The position numbers were made by a program, and so were the translations under genes. A stretch of DNA of 64,000 nucleotides. It comes from Hyphochytrium catenoides. Lineage: Eukaryota; Protista; Hyphochytriomycota. Positions 16,358 to 60,039 of this stretch are shown piece by piece; within the stretch, counting starts at the first letter, position 1; the number at the start of each line of letters is the position of its first letter. The stretch lies in contig FLMG01004215.1 of NCBI GenBank assembly GCA_900088475.1, forward strand, positions 110,561 to 174,560. Direction: 5' to 3'. The notes beneath the pieces are model-generated. The model worked only from the letters and a program-made list of their open reading frames with translations. It was not told the origin of the DNA and did no database searches.

Positions 16358-17071
16358 TTACATGAACGACACTGTATACGAGAGATGGTTGTCCCATGAG
16401 AGCTCTGCCGTTTGCCCAGGTAGCAAAGGCCCTACTCCTTCTGGGGTTCCCGTGAAGAGAAGGTCCCCATCGCAGATTGGAAAGTATTGGCTGACATACT
16501 CTATGGCTTCCTGCGGTTTCATGGTCATGCTTAGCCCTGCCCCCGATTGTCTGAGCTTCCCATCAACGTGCAGGGTAAATTCGTCCTGCATAAGCTTCTC
16601 TAGAGGAACCTCAGAAAGTGGAATGAAGGGGCCCACTATCGCTGCACTTGCAAACACCTTCCCAATCTCCCAAGGATGGCCGTTCTTCTTCAAAATGCCT
16701 TGAACATCCCTAAGCGTCAGGTCTAATCCTAGTGTGGCCGCGGTGATGGCAACGCTGCCAGTTTGAGAGTCCACACCGAGTCGGAGAACGATCTCAAGTT
16801 CATGGTGAATTGAGCCTCTGTTCGTGGGCAGATGAACCTCGTTTGGTGATGAGGTCGCATTGAAGATAGCACTCGGCGGCTTTAGAAATATGACCGGTTT
16901 CTCTGGTATCGCATCGCCAAGCTCTTTGGCATGTGCCAGGTAATTCTTTCCAAGACAAATGACCTTGTCAATAGCCATCGGTCCGGGCCTCTGATGATAC
17001 TGTCGCCGAAGTGGTTGAAGGAAGATGGCTGAAGTGGAAAGAGCCTGGCCAATCCGGGTAAACTTGCGCAT
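16358..17071 (-). CDS. FAHD1: Fumarylacetoacetate-hydrolase-domain protein (FAHD1/YcgM-like acylpyruvase/oxaloacetate decarboxylase) with probable mitochondrial presequence
   Basis: Intronless 237-aa ORF: KVICLGKNY..HAKELG, FLKP, HHELE, LDLTLRDVQ, PWEIGK, GDLLFTGTPEGVG. Confidence 0.9.
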   Translation of the reverse strand: MRKFTRIGQALSTSAIFLQPLRRQYHQRPGPMAIDKVICLGKNYLAHAKELGDAIPEKPVIFLKPPSAIFNATSSPNEVHLPTNRGSIHHELEIVLRLGVDSQTGSVAITAATLGLDLTLRDVQGILKKNGHPWEIGKVFASAAIVGPFIPLSEVPLEKLMQDEFTLHVDGKLRQSGAGLSMTMKPQEAIEYVSQYFPICDGDLLFTGTPEGVGPLLPGQTAELSWDNHLSYTVSFM

Positions 17072-25269: not shown

Positions 25270-26234
25270 GACTTCTATTGCCTAGTGACCCAAGTGGGCC
25301 TCCTCTTTGCCAAGCAGAAGCTCGCTTACGGTGCGAAAATGGGGGCTAGGACAGAGAGAGCTTTCCTCCTTAACGCAGCCTCCTCTGCAAACACGACGGC
25401 ACTGTACGAAAGTGTTCAATAAGCTGTAAGGCGCAGAATAGTATATCTGAGAGGCCGAACGGCACCAGGCACACCGCCTCGAGGCAGATGTGACACCGAG
25501 ATTGAGTTGACTAACAGACCAACAGAGATCTCTCCCAGCTCTACAAGTGGATGATGACAGGAAGCAATGAAACAGAGATAGGAAAGCATTGCAAGCGCAC
25601 TTGGCAATCACGCAAGTAAGAGTAGCACATTAACATAAAAAGAGGGGGAGGGAGATACAAATCACCTTAAACCTACACCTATTGACCGTAGAGACAGAGC
25701 AGAAGAAGAGATCCTACTACCTGGGCAAGAGATAGCGAAGGGCGAGCTGCTTTCGAGATGTTTCCTCCTCAGAGAGTAGTTCCCAGTTGCCCCCCGCGAT
25801 CACGCGATCTTCATCAGAACGCCTCCGGGAGTACCGCTTATGATTCTGACTTGCTGTCGGATGCGAATCGCTTTGATCCCATCAGTCAACGAACTCCGCT
25901 CGACGATGGAAAGGGCCCAGCAATGGATCTGTTGGGAGCAGAGCCTTAGAGACGCGACGCTGCATTGAGGAAGAGACTCTTATTCCGCTTTAGGCGAGGG
26001 GAGAGATTCTCCCCCATCTCCTCTAGACTTTCTGCTGGATTCCAGGAGGTAGACTGTCAACGGACTTAGGAGGCTTATAGAAGGAGACCCAGGCACAAGT
26101 AAACTTACCCGTTCCCTCTCATCTTTCCGTGAAAAGGAGCATCGACTCTCTCACTCGCTCCTCTCCGTAGGAATCGAGCATCGTCTGTTTCCTTTCTCCT
26201 GGCTCTAGAGTGCATTTGGCTTCTCAGATCCTGC

Positions 26235-29200
26235 ATGATGTCTCCATCGGCTACGGACAAGATTGGCAAGCTCTCCTCTCGGCTATGGCGAGATTGCAAA
26301 TCGGAAGCCCTGGCCTCTTTGTACCATCCCTTTATTCGACAGCTGGGGCGCGGATCACTTCCCCAGGCTATTTTCCGCAACTTCATCTCGCAGGATTCAA
26401 TCTTCCTCGAGGCGTTGACTAAGGTTAGGACTAACTCTTCTTACTAACTAATGGACCTATGACCACACTAAGGAGACCACGGGTGCTGGTGCAGATATAT
26501 GGGGCGGCTCTGGGCAAAACTCATGGCGTTCAACATATACGAGATCTCACCAGCATGGTCGGAGCAGCGATGGAAGAGCTGCAAGGTCAAGATGCTTTTC
26601 GGGCGGTAGGTGCATCACCACTGCATCGTTGTGGGTTGTTCACTATTATCCTACTTTACACCATTACACTTTAGATCAACCGATGGCCCTCAATCCCGCT
26701 ACTACTTCGCTCTGCCCTCTTGATTTCCAACTATTCTACTTGCTTTACTTATCACTCGGCCTTGTCCCTAACAGCGATGGGGAATCCAGAAAGACGATCG
26801 CACGACCCCTAACCCAGCCACGGCAGCCTACGTGGACTTCCTGCTTCACACGGCGGACACCTCGAAGAATGTTTCATGCATTCTCGCCTCCGCCCTACCT
26901 TGCTCGCGCTTGTACGCCTTCATAGGACAGAACCTCAGTTCGTCTTTCCCCGTGGAGGACAATCAATACAATGAATGGGTTCGCACCTACGCGTCCGACG
27001 ATTTCCAGGTAAAAAGGCAGGGGACCTCCTGGCGGATCGAGAGAACGATGTAAGAATCAGGGCAATACACGGAGAAGGGAGCAAAGTACACCGGCCAAAT
27101 CCATCGACTGGGACATTCCTGGTCTGCGTCTAACTAGAGTCCTCCTAGGCAGCTACCTCTTTATTAGAGAAACTTCTAGATGAACACGCCAAGGAGGAAG
27201 GTGTAGATTACGGCACCCTACTAGCGTACTATAAGACTGCCATGGTGCTTGAATATCAGTTCTTCGATGCACAGTCTGACAGTTTAAATCCAAAAGAGGA
27301 CGCACGGAGGAGACTTGAGAGAGTGAAGCTTTTCGGGACTGACTACGATGACACGTGCACCACGGGTGACACTTCAGCCACAATTCCCTTGCTTGCCCTC
27401 AGGAAAAGTGAGACTTCTGAAGGTAATGTCGCCTTGCTTCGCGTCTGCCAACCTCTCTCCTACTTGACTAGCACTCATGCCTCTTCCGATGATAAACCCC
27501 AAGGGCACCTTCATACCAGTTTCTTTATCGGTCAAATAACCTCTCCGGGCTAAGTCTCTTGTCGCCTATATTGTCTTGCTTTTATTATTGCTAAAATTGT
27601 CAGACACGCAAAAGAGAGAAGGGACATGGAAAGGTCTGGTAGACCAGTATTCTGAGGCCTACCATCGGACACTCACCTCGCTATTTGGGCCCTCAAACGA
27701 TTCTACGACACCTCAATCTGGTCTTAACCAGAAGGAACTTGACCGCATCGTGGCTGCAATGGAAGATTTGGAAGTACCAGCAGTGCATCGAGTGGCCGAC
27801 TCTGGCGTCCTGTCAGGAGTTTCGACAGCTGACATTCACCGTGCAGCTGCAGGAATTGCGTTCAAACCGCGCTGCCTGTCTGTTCTTGAAGGTATGTAGC
27901 ACTTGTTACCTTGCGCACCCTCCATGTCCTGCTGGTCTATACCTGCGTTTTCCGCTGTGTTGGCTCAAAATCTTCTTCCAAATTCTAACGTATTGGGCTT
28001 TCTACAGCCGTCCTTGGTGCTTACCACTGGTAGAAAAATACTCAAACTTACTCGATGTCCAATTTAGGATTGCAACAGCAGACTCAAGTTGTCGTTTTAT
28101 CAGTCAACTGGTCTACCCAGCTTATTAGGTCTTCATTCCAGCACCAAGGGCTGGATATGGCCAGCAATGGCGCTAGCCACGGCATTGAAGTTTTAGCCAA
28201 TGGTAGGATAAGGCAAATAGGCCATGGGGGGGAGAGAGGAGTGGGGAGGGCTACGCAGAAGGAGGTTTTTTCACCTAAGGTCAATAAGGAAAAGAAAACT
28301 GGGGCAAAGTTAGAACGTAGAATGGTCCTTAAGACCAGATGGCCTGAAAGTGAAAGCTTCAACCTTGGGGGATAGCAACGGCGAATGGGTCGGGAACAGA
28401 CCCACAGGAAGAGAGATGAGCTGCAGGGACTGTATAGATAGCAGCCTGAAGAAATGACAGATCGACGGCGTACTAAGCATGGCGCGACTACAGAGCTGCA
28501 GATGCAAGGGGATCTGGCTACAGGGGGAATCGACCGTGTCAACTTTACAGCACAAGATAAGCTGGCCACGTGGCAATCTCTTCTCTCTCAAGAGACCGAT
28601 GGTAATAAGTCCGACAAAAAGTTGCTCACAGTTTTTCTTGGCGACAGCTTGACAGACATCCTCGTCCTACTGAAGGCGGACATTCCCATTGTAATTGGTA
28701 AGGAGAACGAATGAGGGTATCTCGATTCTGACTCCCAAGCTTATCAATTAGTTTAGCTACCTCTTGGCCGCTACTATCAGCACTTCTCGGTCATGCTTGC
28801 CATCGGCCATCCGGTAAACTTATCACCCTTTAACACTGTAGGGACCAATGACAACCTCCGTAGGGCGGCGGAGAGAGTGGACATCAGGTTTCTGCCCCTT
28901 CTAGCTGCCACAGAGATTTTCGAGGTACAGGTCAGCGGATCCATCTTGTCAGCCATTGCTTATGATCCTTGGCATTGCACTAAGCTATTGCGTCATTGCA
29001 TGTTTATTCTCCCATTGATGCCGTTTGTAGAATACGCCACTCAGCTCTCCATTAGGACCACCTGTGCTCTACGAGGCTGAAGGCTGGGAAGATGTGGAGG
29101 CTTTCTTCCTTTCCTTTGCGCCGGGTCGACAGGTACTTTCTAGAAGATGTTAGTCTTAAGTTAGAGGAGGTAACGGAACCAACGATGCTGATCTTATTCT

Positions 29201-31818
29201 TTACAGGTCAAGCTTTCTGAACTCAGGAAGACCGACGAACCAGTAACTACGCATACCATCCCACGGGCGTTAACAGTAGCAGGCTCGGATTCCGGGGGTG
29301 GCGCTGGAATACAGGCTGATCTTAAGTCCTTTCAGATGAACGGAGTCTTCGGGATGACAGTCCTAACAGCTCTTACGGCACAGAACACAGGTAAAGGACG
29401 TTATTTAGCGTCGATGTGAATAGCTTCAGTCTCAAAGGACCAATAGCCTCATTTCCCGCCCACGAATAGCCTCAATTTCTTTCACTCCTTGTAAGATTGT
29501 ATCGGATCAAACTCAATCGGTGTACAAGGTTCATCGTCATTCAAAAACCCCACTTTCCCTCTGTGTCCATATTGATTGACGATTCTTGTCTGTGATTGCG
29601 TCATCGCAGCCGGAGTGCAGGCCGTAGAACCGGTGCCAATTGAGTTTGTCCGAAAGCAGCTGCAATCGGTACTGGAAGACATAGGAAGTGACAGCTTGAA
29701 GACCGGAGTACTCTTCTCAGCAGAAATAGTCAAAGAGGTGGCCGCTGCTGTTCGGTCATATGGTATACGCAATGTCGTGGTGGATCCCGTCATGGTTTCC
29801 TCTAGCGGACACAAACTTATAAGTGACACAGCTATTGAGGTAAGCTAATACTTTCAAGGTGGGGGACATCTAGGGCTTGGGGCATAGATTTAGAAGTGCT
29901 CAAAGTTCTCTGATGAAGGGCAAGCGATATGTGTTGGGTTGGAGATACTAGGACGACGTCGAAGATGCAAACAGTAAGCTTTTAACCATTCCCCTTGGCA
30001 TCACGTCTCACTTCTAGGCACTGATAAGTGAGCTCTTTCCTCTCGCAACCGTGGTCACGCCCAATATCCCAGAGGCTTCAATGCTTTTGAAGAACAAGGA
30101 GATATCCTCTCTCGAACAGATGAAGGAGGCGGCTAAGGAGCTGCACAGCTTTGGACCTAAACTTGTGCTTTTGAAAGGTGGTCATCTGCTGAAGTTTCAG
30201 AACGAGCAGTTCTCCTTTCCGAAAGTGAGCCAAGAAGGAGAAACAAGGGTGGCGGAGCCCCAAGGAACGGCACAAGTAACTGATATTCTCTATGACGGTG
30301 CAAAGTTCTACGAGTTTTCCCGACCAGCGTTACTAACGAAGAACTCACACGGAACCGGTTGTACGTTGGCCGCAGCAATTGCAGCCCAACTAGCCCGTGG
30401 TCTACTCCCGTGTGAAGCAGTGGCAGAGGGAATCCGATACCTAGCCAGCGTTCTAGGTAACCGCTGGAAGATGGACTCTGTCTTAGCTTTCCATCTACAT
30501 TTCTTACCATATCAAGCTCCATATTGTCTGACCTTACTCCTCATAATGTTTTGTCCTACCTGCAACAGCTTCTAGCCATGGACTCAATCTCGGAGGTGGC
30601 GATAACAAACCTTTGAATCATGCCTTTCAGCTGACAGAGTGCAGTCCAATCCGCCGGGAAAGAAGGAGGAAAAGAGGCCTCGAACTGGACCCTGTACGCT
30701 GTGACCGATGAGGATATAATAAAAGCTCGTGGTTTGAGCCTTTTATCTGCAGTTTCGCAAGCGATTGATGGAGGCGCCTCTGTGAGTTTGTGGCAGACAG
30801 CCACACTTCTCTGCCATGTGCACCCAGTTACCTTCTTTAGCTGCCTAACGTTATCTCTTTGCCGACGGTCACAAGGGGTTGCAGTGATCTTTGCTCCCCA
30901 AACTGTCCTCCTGTCATTTTACAGCTCGTGGTGACGTAATCTGTCCTTACATGCCTTTCTAACACGTGAACCTGCTCGTCATGACTTCAATAAGATTATC
31001 CAGATAAGAGAGAAAAAGGCCAGCACAGGAGAGTTTGTCAGACAGGCCAGGGAGCTCCTAACAATTACCAGAGCCCAAGGTGTCCCTCTCATTGTCAATG
31101 ACAGAGTCGACGTCATGTTAGCCAGTGGTGCCGACGGCTTGCATATCGGGCAGGAGGACATGGATGCTGCGACTGCAAGGCAGTTGATTGGAACTCAAAG
31201 AATACTTGGAGTCACTGTTAGTGATCTTTGCTTGCTTGTTTAGGCTTTCTCTCCCTTTCTTTAAGCTCCCTTTTATCTGTTTGCGTTTAGATACAACCAG
31301 TTTCCCAGCAGTTGTCTGGATTTCTATCTCTAGGTTGATCCTTAAAAGCAATTGCTGCCGGTCAATGCCACTTATTATGACCATGTCTTCAGGTCGGCTC
31401 CGTATCTGAAGCTTTGAGAGCTCAGGCTGCCGGTGCTGACTACCTCGGTACAAGCGCGGTGTTTGCTACCCCTACCAAGACCTCGGGTACTGGCTCTGTC
31501 GCCATTGGATTGGCAGGATTGAAGGAGATTTGCCAGGCAGTCAGCATTCCCGTAGTCGCTATAGGTATGCACTCCTGCCATATTTGCACCTGAAGGAACG
31601 ACAATATTCTTCATATCGTCAACTGTAAAGACTACTCCTCGGTATACTTTCTTGATTCTGTGCTTCTGACAGCTGCGCTGCTGCCAGGGGGAATAAATGA
31701 GACCAACTGCTCAGAGGTTATGAGCCAAGGTTGCGCAGGCGTTGCGCTGGTCTCCGCAATTTTTGGCTGCCAAGACATCGCAAAAGCTTGTCAATCGGTC
31801 TTAAGTAAGCTTTCTTAG
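26235..31818 (+). CDS. Thiamine multi-enzyme fusion: TenA (thiaminase II family) - HAD thiamine-monophosphate phosphatase - ThiD HMP(-P) kinase - ThiE thiamine-phosphate synthase; 16 exons, about 1070 aa
   Basis: TenA: [38 protein letters not shown]: DYDDTCT, SVNWS, GDSLTD. ThiD: [42 protein letters not shown]. ThiE: [40 protein letters not shown]. One-nt frame offset near 30635-30690. Confidence 0.88.
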
Positions 31819-32191
31819 GCTTCAATTTCACACAATTGCCCTCAGAGTCTTGCACATTAGTCTGTCTATGACGCTACCGTTGTGCTATCATTAGTTGGTG
31901 ACTCTATCAGTGTCCCTATTAGCCTACTAACCAGATTACGTTCACTCTCAGCGAGTGGTGCGATCAAAGGCTATAAAAGGTCCTATAACCCTTTATACAA
32001 TGTATTATGAGTGGTCCTAAGCTTATTAGCCAGAATATGACGAGCGCGTACCAAAATAGATATAGTAACAGGGTAACGCCAGAGAATCGAGAACTTGTAG
32101 AAGTAGAAGAAAGGACGAAAAAGGCTACATATAGGAGGGAAGAGGAAGATGACAGGGGACAAGCGCGACTATGGGTACGAACAACTGCATT

Positions 32192-51474: not shown

Positions 51475-51546
51475 TGCCCGAACTGGGGATTGAACCCAGG
51501 ACCTTCAGTTTACAAGACTGATACGCTACCACTGCGTCATCCGGGC
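51475..51546 (-). tRNA. tRNA-Thr(UGU)
   Basis: GCCCGGA TG ACGC-AGTGGTA-GCGT A TCAGT-CTTGTAA-ACTGA AGGTC CTGGG-TTCAATC-CCCAG TTCGGGC A; Pol III terminator TTTTT 3 nt downstream. Confidence 0.96.
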
Positions 51547-52112: not shown

Positions 52113-53159
52113 TCATTTTTGCCAGCTGATGGTGCCCGACACAGCTAGAACTAACATTGTAAATGACAGTAAGAAGAGTAGTGAGACACGTAAAACCCAG
52201 CGACCAATAGCTGTGGAACTCCTGGGGTATTTCCACATGATCCCGATGGCATTCGGTGAGCGCTTGATGACTTCTTGGTTCTGGCACATCTGACCCAGCT
52301 CCCCGTCTAGTCCTTTCAAGCGTCTCGCCAGATTTCCCAGTTCTTGCTGTTTGAAGGTGGTGTTGGACAGCCACTCGCCTTCATCATCCTTCCTATCAAC
52401 AACTGTCCTCACTTGGTTGAGGCCTTGTAGAGAGGTCACAACATGGCCTACCACTAGCACCCCCGGTGGCTTGACGTTGAATTGCAAAGCCTTTTCAGCA
52501 ATGCAAGAGATCGTTCCCCGGACACATCGCTCTCCTGGGCATGTGGCTCTTTCTATTATTGCTGCTGGTAGGTCAGATGGATAGCCAACCTCCACTAACC
52601 GTTCACACAAGTTCCTGAGTCTCCCCATGGCCATCAAAAAAACCGTGGTTCGGTTTTCCTCAAAATCAGGGACTTTCTTTTCTGTGTCATTCATTCCGTG
52701 ACCAGTGCATATTAGGAGTTGATCGGCCACGCCCCTCAGAGTGCAAGGAATGCCAGCGGATGCAGGACCCGCAATGCAGCTGGATATCCCTGGTATGACC
52801 TCCGCTACAAAGCCATGCTTTGCGTACTCTATAATCTCTTCCCCACCTCTACCAAACACTAAGGGGTCTCCGTTCTTGAGGCGTACAACGTGCTTGCCCT
52901 CCTTGGCACCTTGCAGAACCCATCCATTAAGTTCGTCCTGTGCCTTGTTCGCCGAGCCGTACTCCTTCCTAGCAATCTTTAGTTCGCCACGAACAAGATC
53001 CAAAATTGCTTGGTCAACGAGACGGTCGGCTATTACTAAGTCTGCCGACGTCAGTGCTTTATAGGCTCCCACAGTAAGCAAGTCTGGACTGCCCGGACCA
53101 GCGCCCACTAATTGTATCCTGTAGCTTCTGGATGATGATGTAGGCTCCGCAGGCAACAT
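52113..53159 (-). CDS. MET1: Uroporphyrinogen-III C-methyltransferase (SUMT; siroheme synthesis) with C-terminal extension and transmembrane tail, intronless
   Basis: LVGAGPGSPDLLT, IADRLV, VVRLKNGDPLVFGRGGEE, IPGISS, GIPCTLRG, PAAIIERAT, PPGVLVVG. Confidence 0.92.
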   Translation of the reverse strand: MLPAEPTSSSRSYRIQLVGAGPGSPDLLTVGAYKALTSADLVIADRLVDQAILDLVRGELKIARKEYGSANKAQDELNGWVLQGAKEGKHVVRLKNGDPLVFGRGGEEIIEYAKHGFVAEVIPGISSCIAGPASAGIPCTLRGVADQLLICTGHGMNDTEKKVPDFEENRTTVFLMAMGRLRNLCERLVEVGYPSDLPAAIIERATCPGERCVRGTISCIAEKALQFNVKPPGVLVVGHVVTSLQGLNQVRTVVDRKDDEGEWLSNTTFKQQELGNLARRLKGLDGELGQMCQNQEVIKRSPNAIGIMWKYPRSSTAIGRWVLRVSLLFLLSFTMLVLAVSGTISWQK

Positions 53160-54603: not shown

Positions 54604-57600
54604 ATGAGTGGAATCTTGAAGCTTAAGGCGCTCCAGAGTGCCCGATTTGAGGTATGTATAACGGCCTCTTGATGGCCTGTACAGCGCTGTGGCAGACATC
54701 TGAATGGTACTTGTTATCTTAGGGTTTTGAGGAAGACGCGGTTGATGACAAGACGGCAATTGCCCATGTTTCGTAAGTACATCCGTTTGCTATGATCAGC
54801 TCTGCAGTGCTGATGAGTGTCCTTTGCTATCTATCTCCTGCAGCTACGCTCTCAGCGACATCTCCTTTGTACATCCTATCACTCTCTCGAACTACCTCGG
54901 AGAGGCTGCTGTATTTCTATCGAATAATGGCGTAGAGAACGTGAATGGCAAACCAGGACAAGTTTACAGCCATGTCTATCGGGAGAGCTTGGCAGGTACT
55001 GACTCTAGACACTTAAAAAGTAGGCTGCTTGCAGAGGATCTTACCGTTCTACTATACAGGGAAGACCCTGGAGTCCCTCCAGCAGGGACAACTGGCCACG
55101 GTATACACAGCCTCTCAGAACCTGCCACAGATGATCCCGAACATGTATCAGATTGCACAATCTTCCCTACCCTGCGTCTTTCACGTTGCTGCGCAGACTT
55201 TAACTAGACAGAACACCATTGAGGAGGACCATTCTGACATAATGTCCGTCAGACACACCGGCTTTGCGATTCTCAGCGCACACTCACCTCAGGAATGCCA
55301 TGATTTAGCAGTAATCGCCCATATCGCCTCATTGAAGTCACGAGTTCCTTTCCTTCACTTTTATGATGGGCTCCGCTCAGATGAGCCGACACAGCTGGTT
55401 CAGCTGCAGCGGCTAATATCTTATGATCGATTGGCAGAAGCGTATAAAGGAGCAACCAACGTTAACGAAGAGGGTGAACGTGAGGAACAATCACCACTCT
55501 TTGTGCGGCAGTCCAAGAAGGCCTCGGCTAGGTTCTTAGCTCTACCCGCGGTGGTGGAAGCTGCAATGACAGATCTCGCGACTCTTCTCGGGCGTGAGTA
55601 CCAACCATTTGAATATGTAGGTTCCCCATCGGCAGAGCTTTTGCTGGTAGTCATGGGGACCGCAGCATCTGTGGCAGAGAAGACAATTAAGTCTTTGGTC
55701 AACGGTTCTTCCAAGCGCGTGGGGCTCATCAAGGTCCGACTCTATCGTCCATGGTCTACCGCTCACTTCCTCAGAGCTGTCCCTCTAACCACTAAAAAAG
55801 TGGCAGTGCTGGACCGGTGCGTAGATCCAGCAACAATGGGTGAACCACTCTTCCAGGATGTTCTCGCTTCATTCCAGCGCAAGGAATCCTGGCAAGGACC
55901 TACCCCGGTAGTAGTTAATGCTCGTTATGGCCTCGAAGGCGAGAGCTTCACTACCTCTTCTGTGTACAAAGTCTTAGACAAGCTTGTAGATGCCGTTTCA
56001 TCAAGCGGCTTTACAGTTGCGAACGGTTATAACTCTTACAAGCCTAAAGTAGTTACTCCGGCCCAGAATGGTGCAAGTGAGGTGAATGCCAGTGGAGACA
56101 ATGCCCCAGAGGCTCCCTACCTCAAGATGCTGACCAAGCTCTTCAACGAGCGGCTCGTAGTAGCCAATCTTATTGCGGATGAGACAGTATGGGGTAGCAA
56201 CAGCGCCTTGGCTCAAGTTTCAAATAGATCCTTCAAGGACCTGTTAACAGACAATTACGAGTTAGACGAGAACGCAGAGCGGGGTTTTGGCCTGCACCTT
56301 GCCCTGCAACAGAAGAGGAAGCGTCTTCAGTCCCTGGTTTCTGATATCTTGACGGGAGCAGCTGGACAGCTAGCTTCCGAAGAGCTCCGAACAGCTCTTG
56401 CTGGCTGGAAAAAGGAGGCGTCACCTTCTGCGTCCGCGGACTATGCGGCTCAGATATCATTCATGCTAGAGGCAGAGCGCTCCAAGCACCAAAGGCTGGA
56501 AGAGCTCTACAGTCAGCGCCACTTGTTGCCTAAGCCCTCTCAGTGGATTCTGGGCAGCGATCAGTGGGCATCTGATATTGGTAACAGCGGCCTTCATCAC
56601 GTCATTGCCTCAGGGGAGAACATTAAGGTTCTCGTGCTGGACACTCTGCCATATTCTGAAGTTAAGAAAGGTAAGCCGTCGTCTCCCTTCTTTGTTAAAG
56701 AGTCTGGTCGTGGTTAGCGCTTCAACTCTCTCTTCATCCTCCGCGCGTTGTTCCCCGCTTCACTTTACCGCGTAGTGATTCTTAGTGCTCTTCGCCTCTT
56801 ATGTCCCTCTCTTCGCTGCCGTCAGGCAATACCAAGAATGGCAAGAAGGATCTAGGTCTTTATGCCATGAACTACGGAGGTTGTTATGTCGCTTCCGTGG
56901 CGCTCTATGACTCCTATTCACATGTGCTAAGGGCTTTCAGTGAAGCCGATGCCTTTGATGGACCAGCTATCGTATTGGCTTATGCTCCACAGCTGGCTCT
57001 GGACGTTGATGCTCCCGATCGCATCCTGCATTACTTGGATGAGACTCAGGCAGCAGTAAGCAGCGGTTACTGGCCTCTATACAGATGGAATCCAGCCAAG
57101 GAAGAGAACGGAGAGAAGTCGTTTAGCCTGGACTCTCACACACTCAAGCAGGAGATGCAGCAGTTTTTGGAGAGAGGAAACCACCTTACCCTCCTTGCCG
57201 CTCCTACCCCGTCCTTCCCTCCCTCTCTATCAGGCTCTCTGGATGCTGAGTTGGAGAAGAGGCACGCAAAGATGCGCGCAGACGCTTTGGCCGCTTCGTT
57301 TGCCAAGCTTCAAAGCGCTCTGGGAGACACCACTCCCCTTCTTATTCTGTTTGCATCTGACAGTGGAAAAGCTGAGTGTTATGCCAGGAGGCTCGAGGAG
57401 GAGGCAAGAGTGAGAGGCTGCCAAACAAGAATCTTGGAAATGAACGCATTCTCTCCTGACGAGCTTGTAGGAGAGAAGAATGTCCTCTTTGTCTGTTCGA
57501 CAGCTGGCCAGGGAGAGTTCCCCGCCAACGGTAAGGAGTTCTGGCATGCGCTTGCGGGGTCTAGTGTAAGCCTAGAGGGCACGCGATTTGCCATATTCGG

Positions 57601-60039
57601 GCTTGGTGACCGCCACTACTGGCCACGGCCAGATGAGAAGCATTACTTCTGTAAGGCAGCCAAGGACATAGATGTTAAACTGGAAGAGCTAGGCGGAGAG
57701 AGAATGGTACGCTGTGGGCTAGGGGACGATCAGGACGCAGATGGTCCTGAAACAGAGTTTGAAGCCTGGAGACCGGAGTTCTGGGAAGCTCTAGGTGTAG
57801 GAGGGGCAGCCGGTGTTGAACTTGCTCCCAAGAAGACCAACGAAGACATCAAGGTCAAAAGTAACTTCCTACGAGGGACTATAGCGGAGGGCTTGCAGGA
57901 CGCTTCCACGGGCTCTTTGTCTGCTGACGATCAGCAGCTAACTAAGTTCCACGGAATTTATCAGCAAGATAACAGAGACATCAGGCAAGAAAGAAAGGCA
58001 GCGGGCATGGAGCCAGCGTACTCGTTCATGATCCGTGTGAGAGTGCCCGGAGGAGTCACTACTCCGGAGCAATGGCTGGCAATGGATGAGCTGGCTGATG
58101 TGTACGCGAACGGTACCTTGAAGTTGACCACAAGGCAAGCGTATCAATTGCACGGCGTGATCAAGAAGCACCTCAAGAAGACTATTCAGGGTGAGGAAGT
58201 CGTCATGGTCTTATGTCCTGGCGTACTTTGGAGGTTCTGACATTGTCTTCTGATGTTTAGGTATCAATCGGTCTCTAATGGACACGCTGGCAGCATGCGG
58301 TGATGTCAATAGAAACGTTATGTGCAATGTCACTCCTGAGGTATCCTCTGTCCATGCTGAAGTGGTAGAGATCTCCAAGCAGCTCTCAGCGCACCTCAGT
58401 CCTCAGACTAGCGCCTACCATGAGATCTGGCTAGACAAGAAGCTCGTTGCAGGCACACAGGACGTAGAACCCATCTATGGAGCAACCTACCTGCCAAGAA
58501 AGTTCAAAATTGCAATTGCTGTTCCGCCCAGCAATGACGTAGACGTCTTTGCTCACTGCTTGGGCTTCATTGCAGTTATTGCCTACGGAAAACTGATTGG
58601 CTTCAATGTGTCAGTGGGTGGCGGTATGGGAATGACCCATGGCAACAGGGCGACATTCCCTCGCTTGGCAGACGTTATGGCATTCTGCACGCCCGATCAG
58701 GTGGGCCAAAGGAGATGTGTCTTTTGCTTCATCTCTCTTCGGACAACTCACACTCTCTCTTGTCCCTTAAGGTCTGCGATGTAGCAGAGAAGATTGTCAC
58801 CATTCAACGCGACTACGGAGACAGGAAGAACCGGAAGCACGCGCGCTTTAAGTACACGGTTGGGGATCTGGGTGTGCCATTTATCAAAGCTGAGCTGGAG
58901 AAAAGATTAGGGTACAAGCTTCAGGAGCCCAAGCCCTTCAAGTTTACGACGACAGGCGACCGCTTTGGATGGACTAAAGGCGCCAATGACACGTGGAACT
59001 ATACCATGTTCGTCGAGGGAGGTAAGGAATGCGGCCACGAAGCAATGCTATGGCTGATAATGGTAGATCGTTGTGTGGAGCGATGTCTCACTTCTGCTAC
59101 TTCTCTGTCCCCGTTTATGGTCTCTATGGTATACCTCTGGTCTTCAGGGCGAGTGATTGATCACGAAGAGTATCCGTTAAAGACAGCGCTCAGAGAAATA
59201 GCGAAGATACATGACGGGGACTTTAGACTGACAGCGAACCAGAACCTTGTGATTGGGAATGTCAAATCTGCGAAAAAGGTAAATGCATGGCCTTTGTCTC
59301 GCCGTCGCCCTCTTTGCATAGCTTTAAGTCTTTTCTCTTGTTCATGCTGGTTCTTTGTTACGCACATCTGCTGATCCACCATTTCATTGTATGATCCTTT
59401 TAGGCTCTTATTGATAGCACACTCAAGAGCTTTGGGGTGGGCAACAATGCTCACACAGGCCTTCGCCTGAACTCAATCGCTTGCGCAGCTCTTCCGCTGT
59501 GTGCGCTCGCCTTTGCTGAGGCCGAGCGATACCTTCCCTCGCTTATTGATCGGTTGGACGAGGTGATAGAGGCTGCGGGGCTAAGGGAGCAAGACATCAT
59601 TATCCGCATGACTGGCTGCCCTAATGGCTGTGGCAGACCCTACTTAGGAGAGATCGGCTTCGTAGGCAAGGCTCCTGGTAAGGCAATTACTACTTTGAAT
59701 GCCGCTATGCGGACGTTCCAGTGCTGAAAATTCCGCCTTCAGGTTGGTCTTGTCTCACTCGCATGGCTTCCCTCTGTTTTCTTGTTAGGCATCTACAACC
59801 TTTATCTGGGCGCCGGTCATGGCGGCGAGCGACTGAACAAGCTCTACCGAGACGGTGTGAATGAAGACCAAATAATAGAGGAGCTGACACCAATTATTCA
59901 GAGATATGCCAGAGAGAGAGAGGAGAATGAGAACTTTGGCGATTTTGTGATTCGCGCAGGCTATGTCAAGCCCTGTCTAGCGGCACCTTTGGTCCCTGTG
60001 AGGGCACCGGGGGAGACCTTCCATGACGTGGACTTTTAG
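54604..60039 (+). CDS. MET5: NADPH sulfite reductase beta (hemoprotein) subunit, fungal Met5/Ecm17 type: PFOR-like domains + flavodoxin + NIR/SIR
   Basis: [37 protein letters not shown]; flavodoxin [21 protein letters not shown]; [34 protein letters not shown] and GCPNGC (siroheme/4Fe-4S ligands). Confidence 0.93.

Follow-up and report, generated by a model that had tools for sequence, protein, structure and literature searches.

In plants, two fusion proteins take part in thiamin metabolism. TH1 (Arabidopsis At1g22940) is composed of ThiD and ThiE, that is hydroxymethylpyrimidine phosphate (HMP-P) kinase and thiamin monophosphate (TMP) synthase. TH2 (Arabidopsis At5g32470) is composed of TenA and HAD domains and is described as thiamin monophosphate phosphatase (Mimura et al. 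2016, as cited in PMC8331165). The present work concerns a gene of Hyphochytrium catenoides, located on the + strand at positions 26235-31818 of a 64,000-nucleotide stretch of contig FLMG01004215.1 (positions 110,561 to 174,560 of the contig; this whole stretch is called the window below). As read from its sequence, the prediction holds that TenA, TH2-type HAD, ThiD and ThiE are coded, in that order, by this one gene.

Other thiamin fusions are built from homologous domains. Yeast THI20 (ThiD-TenA, PDB ID: 3RM5) and THI6 (ThiE-ThiM, PDB ID: 3NL2) display the same tendency to fuse, but differ in partners and order. Bacterial ThiE/ThiD/TenA and HAD(ThMPase1)/ThiD fusions (PMC4921024, Table S3A) also have other partners or order, with HAD domains drawn from other HAD subfamilies (HAD_2/Hydrolase). 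None of these yeast or listed bacterial fusions unites all four domains. The catalogue of prokaryotic thiamin fusions by Henry et al. 2016 includes TenA-HAD, ThiD/ThiE, ThiE/ThiD/TenA and HAD/ThiD, with the four-domain form unlisted (PMC4921024), and the haptophyte study of Gutowska et al. handles TH1 and TENA separately (PMC5635689). No description or test of a four-domain fusion was found in full-text searches of the literature, a mention in Mimura 2016 or Zallot 2014 being possible.

Compared with the plant proteins, the window protein corresponds to both of them placed head to tail. A full-length alignment with plant TH2 takes in residues 5-533 of the window protein, at 26-32% identity (Phalaenopsis "bifunctional TH2 protein", E 1.6e-54; Sphagnum, E 8e-73). 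TenA cysteine and HAD motifs I-IV are common to both, the cysteine of plant TH2 being present in our 51-sequence TenA-HAD alignment, but plant TH2 ends where the window protein goes on into ThiD. Residues 540-1062 align full-length with plant TH1 at 42-44% identity (Marchantia 44%, E 7e-130). TH1 begins at a start codon of its own and carries a plastid transit peptide, whereas the ThiD-ThiE unit of the window has no start codon and lies behind HAD. These two alignments bear out the proposal of an initial annotation, made from the sequence without database searches, that plant TH2 and TH1 are here joined in one gene. We consider it probable that the locus belongs to a heterozygous, stramenopile-like protist and is a single nuclear gene, orthologous to a widespread eukaryotic family of head-to-tail TH2-like and TH1-like fusions, and that the sequenced haplotype is frameshifted while the other one codes for the full four-domain enzyme.

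Gene model, domains and the HAD/ThiD joint

The sequence was translated in three frames and read through, which gave a gene of 16 exons, running on the + strand from ATG at 26235 to TAG at 31816-31818. All 15 predicted introns are of the GT-AG type and measure 71-291 nt. Domains were called by running Pfam profiles exon by exon with curated cut-offs. The predicted parts of the gene are:

26235..26423, + strand: exon 1, start codon and TenA N-terminus with the Asp of QD; first ATG of the open frame, TENA_THI-4 E 1.4e-5, orthologue starts coincide
26495..26605, + strand: exon 2, TenA; GT-AG introns, phase 0 on both sides, collinear with orthologues
26775..27008, + strand: exon 3, TenA core with active-site Cys (SALPCSRLY); TENA_THI-4 E 2e-11, Cys aligned to B. 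subtilis TenA (1TYH/1YAK)
27149..27422, + strand: exon 4, TenA C-terminus (Glu of LEYQFF) to HAD motif I (DYDDT); stop-free, motif residues invariant in 51 sequences
27604..27891, + strand: exon 5, HAD cap region; collinear with orthologues, allelic single nucleotide polymorphisms (SNPs) both synonymous and non-synonymous
28068..28202, + strand: exon 6, HAD motif II (VLSVNWS); frame reading and orthologue alignment
28494..28697, + strand: exon 7, Lys of HAD motif III and motif IV (GDSLTD); frame reading and orthologue alignment
28842..28924, + strand: exon 8, C-terminal part of HAD; alternative donor possible at 28930/28931
29031..29132, + strand: exon 9, end of the TH2-like half; aligned with the C-terminus of plant and stramenopile TenA-HAD proteins
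29133..29206, + strand: intron 9, HAD/ThiD joint, 74 nt, GT..AG, phase 0; homologous phase-0 intron in the related contig L001 (see below), two allelic SNPs
29207..29390, + strand: exon 10, linker and ThiD N-terminus; Phos_pyr_kin E 1.7e-14
29610..29839, + strand: exon 11, ThiD; Phos_pyr_kin E 1e-21
30018..30456, + strand: exon 12, ThiD (TPNIPEA, KGGH, HGTGC); Phos_pyr_kin E 9e-36
30569..30781, + strand: exon 13, ThiD C-terminal motif, linker and ThiE N-terminus (WTLYAVTD); window frame broken inside, continuous in L001 and orthologues
30995..31216, + strand: exon 14, ThiE core; TMP-TENI E 1e-24, both allelic SNPs synonymous
31393..31564, + strand: exon 15, ThiE (GADYLG, PTKT, PVVAIG); TMP-TENI E 3.6e-12
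31688..31818, + strand: exon 16, ThiE C-terminus and stop TAG; TMP-TENI profile positions 157-180

Three of the four domains are recognized by profiles in the window itself. TENA_THI-4 reached 25.4 bits in exon 1 and 44.5 bits in exon 3 against a cut-off of 22, the Phos_pyr_kin matches of exons 10-12 together span profile positions 1-230 of 246 (E 1.7e-14 to 9e-36), and the TMP-TENI matches of exons 14-16 span positions 28-180. For the fourth domain, HAD, the window exons gave no Pfam match when tested singly; the HAD regions of collinear orthologues pass PF12710 (P0041 44.6, P0044 35.9 and P0007 34.2 bits, cut-off 27); no solved structure matches the HAD region by sequence. HAD motifs of the window protein read DYDDT (I), VLSVNWS (II), QDK (III) and GDSLTD (IV). 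In the 51-sequence alignment, window included, the Asp, Asp and Thr of motif I, the Lys of motif III and both Asp of motif IV are invariant, and motif II has Ser or Thr in all sequences. TenA Asp, Cys and Glu are likewise invariant (Cys in the 50 sequences aligned there), and the Cys aligns with that of LLPC (Cys135) in B. subtilis TenA. Orthologue alignment also shows that ThiD motifs, including HGTGC, and ThiE motifs YxVTD, NDR, HxGQxD and VxIGG are present and conserved. Catalytic motifs of all four domains, with the TenA Cys of ALPC among them, are thus intact, as the initial annotation had claimed.

The same annotation described correctly how the domains are joined. The closing part of TenA (LEYQFFDAQ) is coded by the same exon, 27149-27422, as HAD motif I (GTDYDDTCT), so that the TenA-HAD junction lies within one exon; the HAD half ends with FAPGRQ at 29132 and the ThiD exon resumes at 29207 in phase 0; and the window reading frames contain no in-frame ATG ahead of the ThiD or ThiE core. 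If intron 9 were retained, a plant-TH2-like TenA-HAD product would arise from the four-domain gene.

A related contig helps to judge this joint. A search with exon 4 gave three matches, among them a 134-aa fragment with 53% identity (P0001), which led to a 3978-nt contig of a Logan assembly, called L001 here. TenA C-terminus, HAD, ThiD and ThiE lie there on one strand, all within 4 kb, and are ~35-65% identical to the window protein. The HAD/ThiD joint of L001 is a phase-0 GT..AG intron of 68 nt (1704-1771), located at the place homologous to window intron 9.

It may be asked whether the locus instead makes two products, as plants do: a TH2-like TenA-HAD protein, ending at the stop in intron 9, and a TH1-like ThiD-ThiE protein made separately. 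A retained intron 9 closes the frame after six codons, at TAG 29151-29153, and stand-alone TenA-HAD proteins exist in plants and in ochrophytes (Ectocarpus, Chattonella). L001 has a possible separate start for the second protein: an in-frame ATG (1751-1753) shares one base with the read-through stop TAA (1749-1751), forming TAATG, and lies seven codons ahead of the ThiD exon. If left unspliced, the message of that organism could therefore in principle give two open reading frames (ORFs), TH2-like and TH1-like. Window intron 9 has no counterpart of this start: no in-frame ATG leads into ThiD, and the only frame-matched one, at 29147, closes after 5 codons. Moreover, GT..AG, pyrimidine tract and phase 0 of the joint intron are kept in the two species, and 30 fetched proteins, one of them transcript-derived, run unbroken across the HAD/ThiD joint. 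Production of two separate proteins is, in our opinion, very improbable, and we favour splicing of intron 9 into one continuous message.

The ThiD-ThiE frameshift and two haplotypes

In the window, use of the acceptor at 30568 keeps the conserved ThiD C-terminus and leads the frame to a stop at TGA 30709-30711, and ThiE (NWTLYAVTD) is open in the next frame only, from 30635. Haplotypes were compared by aligning contigs of three DNA sequencing runs from this organism to 26100-31950; run X2 (2017) comes from a different sample than runs X1 and X3 (2011). Two features bear on the reading of this region:

30683..30684, + strand: AA in TCGAACTGG, one A absent in the other allele; missing in 182/369 depth of run X2, not in X1 or X3
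30643..30644, + strand: alternative AG acceptor (intron 30457-30644); ThiE would be in frame on the window allele, ~25 ThiD C-terminal residues lost, 1044-aa ORF

The window form at 30683 is seen in X1, in X3 and in the remaining half of X2 depth. Deletion of one A at this place fuses the ThiD and ThiE frames into an ORF of 3210 nt and 1069 codons with no internal stop. With orthologue-like splicing, ThiE is accordingly out of frame with the rest of the gene on the window allele and in frame on the other. The initial annotation spoke of one four-domain polypeptide and did not mention the shift; its statement is right for the other allele with its 1069-aa ORF, and wrong for the window allele, where the frame stops at 30709 and ThiE lies one frame over. 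The gene model consequently requires the allele lacking the extra A. L001 matches this intact allele, since its ThiD C-terminus passes into the ThiE N-terminus (LGQGTNRPLHHAYQ..DLSLYAVTD) in one unbroken frame within one exon.

Because X2 carries both forms of 30683 at about equal depth, the locus is heterozygous for the frameshift and not misassembled, and it reveals a heterozygous genome. The extra A could still be imagined as a sequencing or assembly error, both haplotypes being intact in reality, and the agreement of X1 and X3 with the window is not independent, as these 2011 runs may be the data of the window assembly itself. An error, however, would not be expected to appear in about half of the depth (182/369) of the 2017 run, and the affected run comprises only two bases (AA), unlike error-prone homopolymers. 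We judge an error unlikely and retain the heterozygous frameshift.

Over 5.9 kb (26100-31950) the haplotypes differ by ~150 SNPs and ~20 indels. The variants listed individually are 13 indels and 40 SNPs, to which nine more indels and 108 more SNPs are to be added. Among the listed indels, 12 of 13 are intronic and the one at 30683 is the sole exonic case. Among the listed SNPs, 25 of 40 fall outside exons; nine of the 15 exonic ones are synonymous, including all three in ThiE, which fits coding constraint in the modelled frames and a recent frameshift. At several positions, 26427, 26429 and 27459-27496 among them, all aligned contigs depart from the window. Exact look-ups of ORFs for the contig of the second haplotype gave no match.

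Two ways of restoring the frame by splicing were considered for the window allele. A micro-intron (19-31 nt) within the linker between ThiD and ThiE was rejected, because all other introns measure 71-291 nt and the allele difference accounts for the offset. The alternative acceptor at AG 30643-30644 would let even the window allele code for a four-domain protein, of 1044 aa, by an in-frame splice that skips the last ~25 residues of ThiD, and the purely synonymous differences between the ThiE exons of the two alleles are in line with this. These residues, on the other hand, include G-x-G-x-x-P-x-x-H, a stretch that L001 and every aligned orthologue share, that is retained in exon 13 of both alleles with acceptor 30568 and is lost only with acceptor 30644. 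The single exon joining ThiD and ThiE in L001 also corresponds to acceptor 30568, and the alternative is a prediction from DNA sequence. We therefore regard its use as improbable and keep acceptor 30568, with an intact four-domain frame on one haplotype.

Several points weigh against the main reading of one four-domain gene with a frameshifted haplotype. Spliced in the manner of its orthologues, the window allele as sequenced cannot yield a four-domain protein. The intact allele was read in part, nine indels and 108 SNPs lying beyond those listed. Window exons 4-9, located between TenA and ThiD and assigned to HAD, gave no Pfam match when tested singly. Splicing of intron 9 and choice of the exon 13 acceptor are predictions from DNA, and the TAATG of L001 offers a possible start for a separate second protein in a related organism.

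The four-domain family in algae and protists

A family set was assembled from proteins fetched with a 586-aa TenA-HAD match and then with a 928-aa match, and was typed by BLAST with the four window domains. The order TenA-HAD-ThiD-ThiE was found in 30 fetched proteins; the other architectures are HAD-ThiD-ThiE (23 proteins), TenA-HAD only (23) and ThiD-ThiE only (48). Among named organisms, the four-domain form occurs in Coccomyxa, Myrmecia, Bryopsis, Tetraselmis, Raphidocelis, Chlamydomonas, Edaphochlamys, Gonium, Volvox and Pleodorina; several further clades with it come from ENA and Logan assemblies. All of these proteins bear automatic names only ("thiamine phosphate synthase", "hypothetical protein"). 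The following are examples of the four-domain form:

Myrmecia bisecta, P0044
Coccomyxa, P0041
Bryopsis, P0043
Tetraselmis, P0042/P0152
Chlamydomonas incerta, P0059
Volvox carteri, P0067

These chlorophyte proteins (~1000-1250 aa) have the same domain order as the window protein, are collinear with it over the full length at 33-40% identity and have all catalytic motifs in common with it. Residues 11-848 of the window protein align with the Myrmecia four-domain protein in one high-scoring segment pair at 38% identity. The first 848 residues also form a single such pair with the Bryopsis, Tetraselmis and Coccomyxa proteins, and the ThiE part matches the C-termini of all four proteins. The Tetraselmis sp. 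GSL018 member (P0152) is a 1132-aa four-domain ORF of an MMETSP transcriptome. The sequenced window allele differs from the chlorophyte orthologues in being frameshifted, theirs being continuous.

The initial annotation had regarded the architecture as possibly novel. This fails, as the architecture is already widespread: the domain order occurs in 30 fetched proteins from many chlorophytes and other clades. Judged by sequence, the window gene is an added member of a database-only family widespread in algae and protists, not a new kind of gene; it is possibly the first member outside green algae with genomic context.

Shorter or rearranged forms occur as well. HAD-ThiD-ThiE without TenA is seen in many chlorophyte and other proteins (P0047, P0052, P0066, P0107 and others), and ThiD-ThiE-TenA in Cafeteria (P0144); both may represent either real variants or truncated gene models.

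The window protein lies outside the chlorophyte clade and is weakly nearer to stramenopile sequences. Its placement was taken from quick, weakly supported, unrooted maximum-likelihood trees that gave long-branch warnings. The TenA-HAD half groups there with Ectocarpus and Chattonella and the ThiD-ThiE half with Cafeteria, each with a value of 90 in the Shimodaira-Hasegawa-like approximate likelihood ratio test (SH-aLRT). In the TenA-HAD tree, streptophyte TH2 is sister to the chlorophyte four-domain clade (SH-aLRT 88), and other four-domain clades fall outside both of these groups. Given the tree positions of TH2 and of the four-domain clades, an old fusion with later fissions would be plausible, although unrooted trees cannot decide this. 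A bolder version, which we consider doubtful, would take the four-domain gene as the old state in several eukaryotic lineages and plant TH2/TH1 and ochrophyte TenA-HAD as fission products. The heterozygous frameshift and the TAATG of L001 would then be snapshots of the fusion coming apart, and the intact protein would be a channelled line, passing thiamin monophosphate from ThiE directly to HAD.

Predicted function and other genes in the window

By homology to B. subtilis TenA, Arabidopsis TH2/TH1 and bacterial ThiD/ThiE, the chemistry of each domain can be predicted. TenA would hydrolyse aminomethylpyrimidine (AmMP), a breakdown product, to hydroxymethylpyrimidine (HMP). ThiD would add two phosphates, converting HMP to its pyrophosphate (HMP-PP), which ThiE would join with thiazole phosphate to thiamin monophosphate. 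HAD would finally strip the phosphate from thiamin monophosphate, letting thiamin pyrophosphokinase make the cofactor. The four predicted activities would thus cover the way from AmMP through HMP, HMP-PP and thiamin monophosphate to thiamin, which agrees with the suggestion of the initial annotation that one polypeptide could span pyrimidine salvage to free thiamin. The order of domains on the chain corresponds to pathway steps 1, 4, 2, 3 and is not the pathway order; substrate channelling would be a possibility suggested by the fusion itself and by nothing else.

The sequenced haplotype, which has one A too many at 30683-30684 in the linker between ThiD and ThiE, would by itself give TenA-HAD-ThiD with an out-of-frame tail of 25 residues, and the other haplotype would give the full 1069-aa four-domain enzyme. 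As the window protein lacks an N-terminal extension (the Tetraselmis protein has ~110 extra residues), it probably works in the cytosol.

Eukaryotes make thiamin monophosphate, dephosphorylate it and then add diphosphate. A protein that ties the synthase and the phosphatase to pyrimidine salvage and activation would be a natural system in which to probe their coupling. The fusion also lends "Rosetta stone" support to the function assigned to plant TH2.

No TPP (thiamin pyrophosphate) riboswitch was detected near the thiamin gene in an Rfam gathering-threshold scan of the window (1-64000), the only Rfam family there being one tRNA on the - strand (51475-51546). An intron-free ORF of 237 aa belonging to the FAA-hydrolase family is located at 16358-17071 on the - strand. 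Its best matches, with identity of at most 58%, are short metagenomic proteins, a few of them bacterial-named, and one chlorophyte match is lower; a bacterial-type or organelle-derived gene is possible from this pattern. At 55029-58240 on the + strand, ORFs with POR_N and PFOR_II and then Flavodoxin and NIR_SIR_ferr domains adjoin an ORF for tetrapyrrole methylase on the opposite strand (52113-53159, - strand). The layout of POR_N/PFOR_II followed by Flavodoxin/NIR_SIR_ferr is presumably that of a fungal-type sulfite reductase beta subunit.

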